Assembly: GCA_002269645.1 (NCBI GenBank)
Contig: NIVC01003345.1
Span: 39,157-103,156 of the forward strand
DNA from: Macrostomum lignano
Lineage: Eukaryota
Direction: 5' to 3'
Length of the DNA: 64,000 nucleotides
Each line of letters starts with the position of its first letter. Position 1 is the first letter of the stretch. This document shows positions 27,871-64,000 of this stretch, piece by piece. Below the pieces are notes generated by a model. That model made no database searches and was not told where the DNA came from. It was given only the letters and a program-made list of their open reading frames with translations. Position numbers and translations under genes: made by a program.

Positions 27871-28464
27871 GTATTCAAGCAGCAACAAAGGTGAAGCATC
27901 GCATGGCTGGCAAAATGCGTTGTTGTTAAATGGCTAAATGGCTAAGTTTAAATGGCTAAATAAAATCAATATCAAAACAATCAACACTTCAAGACAAACA
28001 GTAAAACAAACACATAAATTGTTCTATACCACTAATGTAATTTCAAAATACCGAAAAAAACAAGTTTGAAGATTACATTTCAGTCATGCTTCTCAAAATT
28101 CCACCATGCGATTGATTACACAAAGATTTAAACAACAATTAAATTCGAACGATAAGCAAGAAAAATATACGTGCTGATCATTCTAACAGTAGTAATAATA
28201 TGAGTAGCCAACAACTAGAAACCCTTGGCAACAACAACAAGTAATACACTGGTCAAGCATTTCAGTAAATAAAAATGCTTCATTGAAACAGAAAATGCTG
28301 CAAATCAGTCAGTGGCATGATAAGCATGAGAAGTCAAGAAAGAAAATGAAACAAAGCAAATTTGCTAAACCATTGCGAGCGACTTAAAAACGCTTGGCGC
28401 ACAGTCAGGACCAAGGCCAGCGAAGTCACCTCTGCCATCAGAGAGCGGAGTTGAATATCTGCGA

Positions 28465-29061
28465 CACAAAGTGCTGCTCAGAGTGACTTCAGACTGCTGC
28501 TGTAACATTGCACTCAAATGGCTTTTCTTATGTGTGCAGCTTTGAGTGCGTAGTCAGATGAACTTTCTGGTTGAACCGCTTGCCGCACACCTTGCACTCA
28601 AATGGCTTTTCTCCTGTGTGCACTCTAGAGTGTGTATTGAGGTCGCTGCTGAAACCGAATCTCTTGCCGCACACCTTGCACTTGTGCGGTTTCACCTTCA
28701 TGTGCACTGCACTAATGTGAGCCTTTAGGTAGCTTTTTCTGGTGAATTTCTTCTGGCAAGTGTCGCACTAGAACGCCCTCTTGACAGCCTGAGCTTGACG
28801 TTGCCGTGTTGCAGCACTGTTCAAAGCTCGGGTGTTCCCGGCTGACTCGCACTCCGGCTGCATCGCTGACTCATTGCGAGACTCGACCTGCTCGACCGCC
28901 GCCGCTCTGCCAGCTTCTGAGTTGGTCGCAGCCGCCTCCTCTGGCTCCGAGTCGCAGCCCATTCCGTGTGACCGCACATGACGCAAGTACTGCGCCACTG
29001 CCGATCGGGTGCGGCAGAACCGCCTGGGACAAAAGGGGCAGGCGACAGAGCCCCGGCGCAT
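28465..29061 (-). pseudogene. ZNF copy Z1, pseudogene
   Basis: [11 protein letters not shown] start; CAG>TAG at ~28768 before finger 1; GGA>TAA in the linker at ~28529; remaining fingers decayed. Confidence 0.8.
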
Positions 29062-29736
29062 CTCTGAGAAACTGTGGGGCTGCGATCTGTGCGGAGATGC
29101 CGATGCTCGAAGCCCGTCTCTGCCGGAGCTGCAATGCGGAGCGATAAGGACTTCGTCACTTAGAGATCCGGGATTGAATTATAGTTTTAATTTTTCAGGA
29201 AAAATACATTCATCCTACAGGAGGACCTAAAAGATTAAAGAATGTAGTAAAGAAATTTGGTGCCATAGTTGAAACACTTCTCAAAAGAGCATATTGCACT
29301 TCTTTCAGAGGTGGAAATTTTGATGCTACTGACAGACCGACTTACTGGGACTTTACTGCGGCACAATGTGGTCTACGAGCTGTGTGCACGGATTAGGTCG
29401 ATATTAACTGTACTCGTAGAAGCAAATCTTGAGCCCTGCAACTCTTTGTGACTGAATTTAAATAATCAAAATTTACGCAGGCCCACGCCTACGAGATCTC
29501 ACGCATCAATTGAGTTTGTGTGTTGGTAAACATGTTGTTTTAGTAAACATGGCCAAGGTACAATAGCTGTAATGCCCATGCTTTGCAGTCGTTAATGAAA
29601 ATATCATTTTCCACAAACGCAAGAAGTCTGGTCTCTTCTTTAAACTGATGCGTGTCTTTTTAGAAATCCAAAAGGTGCAAATCTTAGTTAGTTGGGGTAG
29701 CTTGTGGAAAATTTTGTCAATGTAAATTTATTTAAC

Positions 29737-29958
29737 GGGAGCACGAAAATTTTCCGCAGACAAATTGCCCGCCGAGATTTGCCCGCAGTGAATTTTGCTC
29801 GCATTTTTACGGGCAATTCGCTCGCGGGCAAATTGCACTGCGGGCAAATCTCCACGGGCAAATCTCCACGGGCAAATCTCCACGGGCAAATCTCCACGGG
29901 CAAATCTCCACGGGCAAATCTCCACGGGCAAATCTCCACAGGCAATTCACATGGACCC
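29737..29958. mobile_element. Mutator/foldback-like MITE, 222 bp
   Basis: 9-bp TSD TTATTTAAC (29728-29736 and 29959-29967); GGG...CCC ends; ATTTGCCCG repeats on the left inverted to CGGGCAAAT repeats on the right; absent from the paralogous spacer near 40970, which is diverged. Confidence 0.7.
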
Positions 29959-61417: not shown

Positions 61418-62682
61418 CTCTGAGGAACTGTGGGGCTGCGATCTGTGCGGAGATGCCGATGCTCGAGGCCCGTCTCTGCCTAAGCAGGAATGTGGAGCAG
61501 TAGACTATCTTAATCACTTGTTGGATCCGTTTGTAAACTGGGATTGAAAACATCAAAAAGAACTAAACTACAAGTATGCTTTCTGATTTTGAGAACATAA
61601 AGACGATAGCTGGGTTACATCAACAAATAAATAGCCTAACTTTATATAAACATCTATGAAAGTGATACATGTAAATATAGAATGCATGCTATACTTGAAT
61701 TTGCAACAGTCAATTTTCGATGAAGATTCAAGCGTGTGAAAATCTTGCTGCTAATCGAGAATGTGCCCGGGTACATCTGCTGTACCGATAAGAAATCCTT
61801 GGCACTCGTCAGAAGGGCCTGCCATTGCACTCTTACTCCTTTCAGCCGCGTCTACACCAAACTCACCCAGTTACATCCCTTCCCATTCTGTTTCAACGGT
61901 CCCTCTGCTGCATTCCAAATGCTGTCTACCCGTTTTAGACGGCTCGGGAAATTAAAAAGGAGAACCCACTGCCCTAGACCTGGGAGCTTAGCATGAATGC
62001 ATTTAAGCAAAGCAAAAAAGTGAAATTCCAACTCCATAGCTTATTTTACTAATGAAACTAATGAACAAGAGGATTATGAAGGCAAATTCATTCTCTAATA
62101 ATAAGATTGTGCAGTCATCAGTGTAAGAGGCAACGGTGTGCTGAGGGCAGTCATGGAAACGGTAATTTGGCTCAACCTGTTGACTGTCTTGGCAGCCATT
62201 AAAACCTACATTCTAGCTGCAACTCAACTCAACTTTTTTCCAAAGGACTCTGCGGCACGGCTCAGAGGTTCTCTCTGTCTCGCTGCCGCTCTGCTGCCCG
62301 GCTCGATGCCCTGACAGCTGAGCAATCATGCCAATGACAACAGCTGCATTCGACATTTTACGTGGCCTATTAAAATCTCTATATCAAAACAATAATACAA
62401 ACATCAAGACAAATATTAAAACAAAACAAAGACTTCAATGCCACCGGTATAATTTATAAAAACAGCAAACATCAACTTCCTTTGGCAGCAACAGCTCATC
62501 AGTGCAACAACAATTTCCTAATGCATTCTTCAGAAAAATTTAACAAAAATCATTAATACAAAGAACAAAAAGTTGTCAAGAGATTGCGAATAAATTGAAA
62601 ACGCGTGGAGCACAGGAAGAACAAATATCCGGAGTCAATTTCAGCGATCACATAACACGAAACTGAATATTCTCTACAAAAC

Positions 62683-63406
62683 CTACTGCTTGGAGTGCCT
62701 CTTCAGTATGCTGGCTTTATTTAGTATCTTGCTGCACACCTTGCACTCAAATAGCTTTCCTCCTGTATGCAGTCTTGAGTGAGAAGTGAGGTTGCTGCGG
62801 TGATGAAATCTCTTGCCGCACACCTTGCACTCAAATAGCTTTCCTCCTGTATGCAGTCTTGAGTGAGAAGTGAGGTTGCTGCGGTGATGAAATCTCTTGC
62901 CGCACACCTTGCAATCAAATGGCTTTTCTCCTGTGTGCAGCCTTGAGTGAGAAGTGAAGCTGTAACTGTACCTGAATCTCTTGCTGCACACCTGCACTTA
63001 AATGGCTTTTCTCCTGTGTGCACCCTGCAGTGTGCAGTGAGGTTGCTCCTACGACGAAATCTCTTGCCGCACACCTTGCACTCAAATGGCTTTTCTCCTG
63101 TGTGCCGCCTCGAGTATGTAGTGAAGGCGCTGCTGACATGGAATCTCTTGCCGCACACCTTGCACTTGTACGGTTTGCCTTCTTGTGCACTGCACTAATG
63201 TGAGCTTTGATATGGCTTTTTTTTGGTAAACTTCTTCTGGCAAGTGTCGCACTGGAACGGGCTCTCGATGCCCTGAGCTTGACGTTGCCATGTTGCAGCA
63301 CTCTTTAAAGCTCGGGTGTTCCCGACCGCAAGTACTGCGCCGCTGCCGATCGGGTGCGGCAGAACCGTCTGGGACAAAAGGGGCAGGCGACAGAGCCCCG
63401 GTGCAT
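62683..63406 (-). pseudogene. ZNF copy Z12, 7 fingers, frameshifted
   Basis: Same N-terminal deletion and AAGGCAAACCG frameshift as Z8; divergent fingers RRRSNLTA and HHRSNLTS (x2). Confidence 0.8.
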
Positions 63407-64000
63407 CTCTGAGGAACTGTGGGGCTGCGATCTGTGCGGAGATGCCGATGCTCGAAGCCAGTCTCTGCCTGAGCTGCAATGCGGAGCGGTAGGGACTTCG
63501 TCACTTTGTGATCCGGAATTGAAAGACATAAAAGGAAGTGAACTACACTTATAGCTGAGTCTTAAAGAAAAGTAAACAGACTAATTTTTAATGGACATTT
63601 TACTGGGTGAAAAGTTATTGCTAAACGGCAATGTGACCGGGTACATCTGCATTGATGAGCAATCCTTAGCCCCGGTTAGGAAGGCCGGCAGTGCATTTTT
63701 ACCTCTCCCCGCCACGTCTACCCCAAACCGACCCAGTTTCTGTCTGTATCATCTTTCTGCGTTCCCAATTCTGCGTGCTTATTTGAGACGGCGGTTTAAG
63801 AAATTAAACAAACGGCGCGTTTTAAGCTGCCGAGTGTCAATGTACATGTACATTATCATTTAGAACTGCTAGCTGAGCAGCACGATCGTGAAACTTCTGT
63901 CTGTTTGGCTCTGGACGAACTGAAAAAACAAGGGCGTCACTGTCTTGAGGGAACCTGCGGGAGTCGCCCTGGACTGAAGGAATTTCCTAGGCATTTAGCG

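Follow-up and report, generated by a model that had tools for sequence, protein, structure and literature searches.

A 64,000-nucleotide (nt) stretch of the flatworm Macrostomum lignano genome (the window), from contig NIVC01003345.1 of assembly Mlig_3_7 (GCA_002269645.1), was analysed and found to carry a genuine, recently expanded tandem array of Krüppel-type zinc-finger (ZNF) genes. The array holds 12 C2H2 zinc-finger genes, Z1 to Z12, which lie head-to-tail on the minus strand and span 28498-63406. They probably represent a young subfamily of Krüppel-type poly-C2H2 genes, found only in Macrostomum so far, that has been remodelled by tandem duplication of fingers, of genes and of blocks of genes. 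The products would be sequence-specific nucleic-acid-binding proteins, with a specificity retuned by turnover of the finger cassette. The conservation of the zinc-binding framework, the maintenance of long open reading frames (ORFs) and the presence of gene models derived from RNA-seq argue that at least some of the copies are functional nucleic-acid binders.

A six-frame regular-expression scan for C-x2-C-x12-H-x3-5-H identified 72 canonical C2H2 fingers. They form 12 clusters, exclusively on the minus strand, within 28534-63164. The same scan found no canonical C2H2 finger in positions 1-28400. A DNA profile of the 84-bp finger unit recovered the frameshifted units as well, giving a complete unit-by-unit map. 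The 12 head-to-tail minus-strand copies reported in a first-pass annotation of this DNA were thus recovered by both the finger scan and the unit profile, and the reported range of about 3 to about 11 fingers per gene also holds, the lowest count being 3 (Z1, Z8) and the highest 11-12 (Z11, Z4). The copies had been presented as 12 paralogs. There are indeed 12, but they are not equivalent, since they are organised in a three-gene higher-order repeat. In a self-comparison, long direct matches are offset by 10.1-11.3 kb or multiples of this, and the units have a nucleotide identity of 88-96%. All self-matches of at least 600 nt in the array are direct, and among them no inverted repeats or termini like those of transposable elements (TEs) were found. 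Three gene types can be recognised: A (Z2, Z5, Z8, Z12), B (Z3, Z6, Z9) and C (Z1, Z4, Z7, Z10, Z11). Read along the direction of the genes, their order is A12-C11-C10-B9 / A8-C7-B6 / A5-C4-B3 / A2-C1. The array was also said to continue beyond the window. It does reach the edge, but base 64000 is the final base of the 103,156-bp contig and the array is still running there, so that it is the assembly that breaks inside the array.

The finger units were clustered at a threshold of at least 95% nucleotide identity over the 63-nt finger core. Written as strings of finger clusters (the letters are separate from those of the gene types), the cassettes are CAB.. in Z2, CLAB.. in Z5, CA.ABAJ.BDK in Z4, CLABABADK in Z7, A.BABD in Z10, CCAAAAABAD in Z11, EFGHI in Z3 and EFGJI in Z6. 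Finger clusters are shared between the gene types. Of the 72 units, 45 are closest to a unit of another gene or position, and only 19 to one that has the same ordinal number in a gene of their own type. The view that the same few finger types recur in different orders is therefore upheld, and every helix type that had been named is present. Tandem Repeats Finder (TRF) detects periods of 84 and 168 bp in the finger coding sequence, the latter corresponding to an AB dimer. Five consecutive SDSSSLTK units are found in Z11, four of them identical in nucleotide sequence, together with two identical GFSSDLNT units. Finger 4 of Z6 (NQISNLTT) is identical in nucleotide sequence to finger 7 of Z4, and SFSSSLSS occupies that place in Z3, in the protein P0001 and in the sister contig L003, although in its flanks Z6 is 98.2% identical to L003. 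This finger marks a conversion tract, a clean finger swap. Synonymous diversity (pS) is about 0.36 between finger units and about 0.05 between the N-terminal regions of the genes. This suggests that the cassettes are older than the gene copies and that the genes differ mainly by the re-assortment of existing cassettes.

Unequal crossing-over and gene conversion would remodel the locus, acting on three nested levels. At the first, the 84- and 168-bp finger units in the coding sequence would act as a coding minisatellite; at the second, single genes of about 3-4 kb would be the unit of exchange; at the third, the three-gene block of about 10-11 kb. Existing finger cassettes would in this way be shuffled, duplicated and exchanged between paralogs, with copies continually born and broken. 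A deletion of about 180 nt in the N-terminal region is common to Z8 and Z12, which indicates that the gene was already dead when its repeat unit was copied. Birth and death of the genes, as had been proposed, is supported by this duplication of pseudogenes with their units and by the rearranged arrays on sister contigs.

Seven further loci of 12-21 kb on five other contigs carry 35 more copies, all but one of them head-to-tail. The family total is at least 44 raw copies on six contigs, and the order of the units differs on the other contigs, whose copies include intact ORFs 270-432 aa long and with as many as 11 variable fingers. L003 has the same unit types in another order, and the locus of Z10 to Z12 may be identical with that of the last three L003 copies. 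The loci L002 and L006 form a more divergent sub-group, with N-terminal modules about 80% identical, and lie on a 536-kb contig next to an ordinary gene with an Npa1 domain. The M. lignano assembly is redundant through hidden polyploidy (PMC5730564), so the haploid-equivalent copy number is below the raw count.

The N-terminal 180 aa of Z3 gave ten matches among 5.8 billion proteins. Nine are from Macrostomum lignano and the tenth is P0006, the window's own product. An exhaustive phmmer search of 1.84 billion representatives with the 108-aa N-terminus found only fused or frameshifted family-like models and two spurious repeat proteins. The family-like models are most likely from M. lignano, because they are near-identical to named members. 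When the finger cassette alone is the query, generic poly-ZNF proteins of all animal groups are found at 38-60% identity, with nothing outside the family closer. The earlier suggestion that the family is lineage-specific is thus borne out by the N-terminal module. With clustered paralogs and pseudogenes in one lineage and an excess of change at helix positions, the family has the features of a lineage-specific tandem ZNF expansion.

The proteins match Pfam zf-C2H2 and zf-H2C2_2, with E values down to 1e-63 and 1e-85, identifying them as Krüppel-type poly-C2H2 proteins. Residues 1-33 contain an atypical C2H2-like finger, C-x2-C-x16-H-x3-H, with a sub-threshold match to Pfam zf-C2H2_4 at residues 7-32 (E = 0.006-0.014). 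AlphaFold predicts a beta-beta-alpha fold here, with a predicted local distance difference test score (pLDDT) of 66-79. Residues 34-106 (about 75 aa) are acidic and then variable, and are predicted to be disordered (pLDDT <50). The first finger proper is constant, with H-x4-H spacing (CxTCQKKF...HISAVH). Behind it comes the variable run, in which TGEKPFE linkers join fingers of 28 aa; the fingers are predicted with a pLDDT of 80-92. Types A and B have a constant terminal finger, NQGSHLK(R/T)H..HIV*, whereas in type C this finger is either decayed behind a frameshift, as also in the transcript-derived protein P0004, or deleted, the protein then ending HTNI*. The first and last fingers are thus constant parts of the gene outside the variable cassette. 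The whole coding sequence (CDS) lies in one exon, with N-terminus and fingers contiguous in a single ORF. As had been claimed, the genes are of neither the KRAB nor the ZAD kind: only C2H2-type Pfam families match, and no KRAB, ZAD, SCAN, BTB or SET domain was found in the four full ORFs at E <= 0.01 or in the N-terminal part alone at E <= 10. A protein from elsewhere, P0011 (813 aa), has four tandem N-terminal modules ahead of one finger array. Either the N-terminal module can itself duplicate in tandem, or the gene prediction has fused several truncated copies.

Variation between fingers is concentrated at helix positions -2 to +6, while the C/C/F/L/H/H residues and TGEKPFE are nearly fixed. 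The ratio of nonsynonymous to synonymous differences (pN/pS) was determined for 43 unique units from the window, for 89 from the window and five other contigs, and for 49 from intact genes only. For helix positions -2 to +6, without Leu +4, it is 0.89-1.16, consistent over the three sets. The four contact positions give 0.66-1.19 depending on the set of pairs. For the framework it is 0.12-0.19, which holds in the intact genes alone and in finger pairs that differ by 1-4 nt. On the edges of minimum-spanning trees there are 167 nonsynonymous and 43 synonymous changes in the helix against 102 and 144 in the framework (Fisher p = 8e-17). Both measures confirm the excess of amino-acid change at the recognition helix that was noted at first pass. 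The zinc-binding framework is retained, while the residues of the helix that would contact nucleic acid are free to change.

The Mlig_3_7 gene models were built from RNA-seq (PMC5730564), so the annotated members P0001-P0009 have transcript support. Three of the gene models (L002 10001-10975, L004 10001-10963 and L007 10001-11029) are longer than their protein by exactly 84 nt, or 168 nt in L007, implying 'introns' of one or two finger units. These finger-sized 'introns' most likely result from the mapping of transcripts of paralogs with fewer fingers onto a copy with more. On L003, one annotated 507-aa model (16633-20583) covers two neighbouring copies, running from a Z11-like into a Z10-like gene. 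This suggests a read-through or polycistronic precursor, or else a mis-joined model. Multi-gene trans-spliced precursors have been reported in M. lignano.

Alignment of the 5' regions shows that homology begins about 110 nt upstream of the conserved ATG (MRRGS). All of the transcript-derived protein models begin right after a conserved CATTGCAG, about 70 nt upstream of the ATG. The conserved motif is a probable splice or trans-splice acceptor; 38.8% of M. lignano genes are trans-spliced (PMC5730564). The extra 41-42 N-terminal residues (MSFHFGS...) in the ORFs of Z3, Z5 and Z6 were rejected as coding sequence, since the transcript-derived models start after this motif. Upstream of Z11 (61492) and Z7 (51034), both of type C, the acceptor-like motif is altered to CATTCCTG or CATTCCAG, followed by CTTAG, and the 5' processing site of these two genes may differ from that of the other copies.

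Several points weigh against the array being a set of functional DNA-binding proteins. Z2 (P0006) is the sole full gene model annotated on the contig, and at least five of the 12 copies are truly defective. Six family gene IDs, Mlig014837 among them, do not appear in the neoblast and germline supplements of PMC5816591 that were examined or in the searched literature, in which no description of the zinc-finger family was found either. At the helix, omega is about 1 and not above it, so that relaxed constraint fits as well as diversifying selection; positive selection at the helix is not proven. The DNA specificity of the proteins may be weak, because the helices are Ser-rich with unusual residues (F, V, D) at position -1. 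No effector domain is evident, and most of the N-terminal module is predicted to be disordered. On tree edges, omega in this module is 0.59 for the finger (residues 1-33), 1.04 for residues 34-69 and 1.98 for residues 70-108 (p = 0.06). Overall it is 1.30 (p = 0.33 against neutrality), giving no detectable purifying selection. The module is therefore 'constant' because the copies are young (pS about 0.05), and is not visibly constrained. The proposal that it is an effector of the KRAB or ZAD kind is not supported, as the module consists of one degenerate C2H2-like finger and a low-pLDDT stretch, and the lack of visible constraint weakens the analogy to a conserved KRAB, ZAD or FiNZ effector.

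The main alternative is that the array reflects the largely neutral dynamics of a gene-bearing higher-order repeat in a satellite-rich region. Copies would be amplified, homogenised and lost with little selection for function, and only one or a few of them, or an older solitary relative, would be functional. This is the less probable reading. The N-terminal module and the helix both have an omega of about 1, the defective copies include pseudogenes amplified with their unit, and the array adjoins 28 kb of about 20 different minisatellites while carrying one in each of its own units. The more divergent copies beside the Npa1-domain gene would also be consistent with it. However, neutrality does not account for the low pN/pS of the framework, which in intact genes and in the most similar finger pairs points to recent purifying selection on zinc-finger folding. 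Nor would it predict that several ORFs of 270-432 aa are maintained on different contigs, or that transcript-derived gene models exist.

It was also considered, as the first-pass annotation had suggested, that the genes form a genome-defence family which recognises and silences transposons or tandem repeats in the manner of the KRAB-ZNFs and FiNZ-ZNFs, with the turnover of cassettes tracking repeat families. By analogy with the systems in PMC10547256 a repeat-silencing function is possible, and the one thing pointing to it is the mode of evolution, that is, tandem birth-and-death dynamics with change focused on the helix. More than half of the host genome consists of repeats, long terminal repeat (LTR) elements making up 21% of it and tandem repeats 15% (PMC5730564). 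Across metazoans, the number of ZNFs is correlated with that of retroelements, and there are non-KRAB families, FiNZ among them, by which TEs are repressed (PMC10547256). Homotypic runs of fingers (AAAAA in Z11; ABAB in Z4, Z7 and Z10) would suit DNA with a period of 3 or 6 bp. Against this, the proteins have no conserved domain of the effector kind, evolution of the N-terminal module is close to neutral, helix omega does not rise above 1, and the family is small, with dozens of copies in a redundant polyploid assembly rather than hundreds. Nor is the window enriched for the targets that a crude recognition code gives for the A and AB runs: scans gave 0 matches to GNC x5 for the A run and 1 to GNCNAA repeats for the AB run, at or below the shuffled expectation, which is weak negative evidence because the recognition code is too imprecise for Ser-rich helices. 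A genome-defence role is doubtful. More speculative still is a KRAB-independent invertebrate system of repeat recognition in which AAAAA and ABAB finger runs, made by slippage, read the short-period tandem repeats that constitute 15% of the M. lignano genome. Were this true, the protein array and its satellite targets would co-evolve through one slippage mechanism.

The young, tandemly remodelled subfamily favoured here includes copies in very different states (Table 1). Four of the 12 (Z2, Z3, Z5 and Z11) have intact ORFs as assembled. About four intact copies had been counted before, which agrees with the assembly, but this count is probably too low in view of the excess of 1-nt deletions at 48-64 kb relative to the sister contigs. 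At least five copies are truly defective. Z1 is truncated and has nonsense codons in FQC (F*C) and in a linker (HT*EKPFE), and its 3' end abuts a satellite block. Z4 has deletions, and its finger frameshifts are also present in the 99.3% identical sister contig L004. Z8 and Z12 have their shared deletion and Z9 its 5' truncation; other contigs carry annotated full-length relatives with the terminal finger of Z9 (P0002, P0003). For Z10 a real defect is probable: one of its frameshifts, at about codon 71, also occurs in the 99.7% identical L003, where four of its other indels are missing. Z7 is probably intact in reality, since its three frameshifts are missing from L003 and L005 and its L005 counterpart is an intact 376-aa ORF.

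Table 1. Features of the M. lignano window, with positions counted from its first base
Feature	Position	Strand	Description
Higher-order tandem repeat	28498..64000	-	period 10.1-11.3 kb; runs to contig end
Z1	28498..29061	-	type C; truncated pseudogene at array edge; in-frame 36-nt deletion in N-terminal module; two variable fingers
Z2	31338..32162	-	type A; intact; constant finger 1, variable fingers, terminal NQGSHLKR
Z3	35698..36522	-	type B; intact; 274 aa from MPRGS; ORF open 41 codons further upstream, before probable splice acceptor
Z4	39061..40359	-	type C; pseudogene; 11 variable units; 14-nt, 24-nt and 2-nt deletions in N-terminal module; two 1-nt deletions in finger units
Z5	42357..43265	-	type A; intact; 302 aa; 7 fingers
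Z6	45816..46641	-	type B; one surplus A in an A-run, absent from sister contig, throws terminal finger out of frame
Z7	49812..50961	-	type C; 9 variable units; three 1-nt deletions, none in L003 or L005
Z8	52223..52603	-	type A; pseudogene; N-terminal deletion of about 180 nt in common with Z12; one finger, decayed terminal finger
Z9	55340..55822	-	type B; 5'-truncated; homology starts within finger 1; terminal finger without CxxC
Z10	56822..57730	-	type C; several 1-nt indel events; ends HTNI*
Z11	60170..61417	-	type C; intact; 415 aa; 11 fingers
Z12	62688..63406	-	type A; pseudogene; N-terminal deletion as in Z8; six units including duplicated HHRSNLTS; decayed terminal finger
42-bp minisatellite	34297..34643, 44408-44760, 54123-54353	.	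between A and B genes; once per higher-order unit, copy number differs (TRF)
113-137-aa ORF	32934-33275, 43676-44020, 53388-53801	+	opposite the ZNF genes; about 90-97% nucleotide identity between higher-order units
Cys-loop ligand-gated ion channel exon	518-1081	-	transmembrane TM1-TM2 region; Pfam Neur_chan_memb, E = 1.2e-21; abuts 52-bp minisatellite 929-1663
385-aa ORF	13819-14976	-	acyl-CoA-binding (ACBP) domain, E = 7e-16; coding 45-bp repeat at 14309-14496 (DGSDGENG...)
795-aa ORF	22882-25269	-	about 60 copies of a 27-bp unit encoding 9-aa NADEEHQEQ; non-repetitive ends; no Pfam match

Comparison with the sister contigs shows where the assembly itself may be at fault. Window positions 57234-64000 differ from L003 by 5 substitutions and 16 indels, 14 of which are 1-2-nt deletions in the window, mostly in homopolymers. 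Against L003 and L005, which are in agreement, 48282-52366 has 16 such small deletions. In contrast, 36845-42020 differs from L004 by 20 substitutions and only two indels. The excess of small deletions at 48000-64000 has the appearance of an unpolished long-read consensus near the contig end, and the frameshifts of Z6 and Z7, with most of those in Z10, are probably assembly errors. Because single-base deletions are in excess over near-identical sister contigs, frameshifts at 48-64 kb should not be taken at face value, and for users of the assembly several seeming pseudogenes near the contig end are probably consensus errors. It is highly improbable that mis-assembly of a few alleles or homeologs of the hidden-polyploid DV1 genome has produced the apparent array: the contig end does fall inside the array, sister contigs match parts of it at 99.3-99.7%, its final 16 kb carries 1-nt deletions of the long-read type and assembly redundancy has been reported (PMC5730564), but units within the contig differ by 4-12% and in finger number, deletions and truncations, far beyond allelic difference, and the A-C-B organisation recurs on independently assembled contigs. 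Mis-assembly is thus an unlikely source of the array, but it does account for several of the 'frameshifts'.

Other features of the window were also noted. The plus-strand ORF of 113-137 aa that recurs between the ZNF genes was at first taken for a possible retrotransposon gag fragment. Neither Pfam nor a search of 5.8 billion proteins gave any match to it, and the idea was dropped; the ORF may have arisen by chance, or it may be an orphan gene that travels with the repeat unit. About 20 different minisatellite or microsatellite arrays, each 150-1800 bp long and with a period between 4 and 64 bp, lie amid gene fragments at positions 1-28000. This mosaic is unusually dense even for a species whose genome is 15% tandem repeats. 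Scans of the window for Rfam families and for tRNA genes gave no match. A promoter and terminator scan was set aside, its sigma-70-based model not being applicable to a eukaryote.

Lineage-specific poly-ZNF expansions are common in animals, yet beyond tetrapods, insects and cyprinid fish almost none have been examined at the resolution of a single locus or had their function tested. Flatworms are not mentioned in the main text of a metazoan survey of ZNFs and TEs (PMC10547256). In this array, three nested levels of tandem duplication and a clean finger swap are visible within 36 kb. M. lignano has working RNA interference (RNAi) and transgenesis (PMC5730564), and the nearly identical 5' region of all copies, with about 90% identity over the 5' UTR and N-terminal region, is one that a single RNAi probe could target, making the idea that ZNFs track repeats testable in a spiralian. 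The kind of gene family is already well known, and the main interest is a compact, experimentally tractable example rather than a new principle.

The KRAB-ZNFs of tetrapods form tandem clusters of poly-C2H2 genes with TGEKP-type linkers that undergo birth and death by segmental duplication and change mainly at the helix contact positions. The array shares with them its tandem clusters, TGEKP-type linkers, gain and loss of fingers and helix-focused change. It differs in that the genes have no KRAB domain, the CDS is in one exon and there are dozens of copies rather than hundreds. Their N-terminus, a degenerate finger and a disordered stretch, shows no sign of constraint, and silencing of the TRIM28 type is not implied. 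In insects, ZAD-ZNFs are the most abundant lineage-specific class of ZNFs and are often clustered; the ZAD, about 75 aa long, is a C4 dimerisation domain that coordinates zinc. Like these, the array is lineage-specific and clustered, and where the N-terminal module of the ZAD-ZNFs binds zinc, that of the array is a C2H2-like finger by sequence. However, this element is a single C2H2-like beta-beta-alpha unit and has no ZAD match in Pfam.

The flatworm ZFP-1 and ZFP-1-1 proteins are restricted to flatworms, including macrostomids, and have three conserved fingers with QRSNLQR and RKDHLxR helices (PMC5927768). The array family likewise consists of C2H2 proteins restricted to flatworms, but its finger number is variable. 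The ZFP-1 motifs QRSNLQR and RKDHLxR are absent from the 58 helix types in the list of 144 units, which places the array genes outside the ZFP-1 family. The FiNZ-ZNFs of cyprinid fish are clustered and have about 700 members, with a conserved 28-aa FiNZ domain on its own exon, and their knock-down leads to TE derepression (PMC10547256). They resemble the array genes in being lineage-restricted, clustered poly-ZNFs with a short acidic-rich N-terminal sequence without similarity to known domains. Unlike the FiNZ domain, the N-terminal module of the array is not detectably conserved by selection and is contiguous with the fingers in one ORF. The phmmer search with the 108-aa N-terminus, made with the array's own sequence and not with a FiNZ profile, found no fish proteins and gives no indication that the array genes belong to the FiNZ family.

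PRDM9 has a minisatellite-encoded finger array at a single locus, with a PR/SET domain upstream. The array genes have no PR/SET or KRAB-related domain (no Pfam SET match) and form a multigene tandem family. It is in the behaviour of the fingers that the two are alike, as the 84-bp units of the array act as a coding minisatellite, with neighbours of identical nucleotide sequence, changes in unit number, swaps of whole fingers and variation centred on the helix positions.

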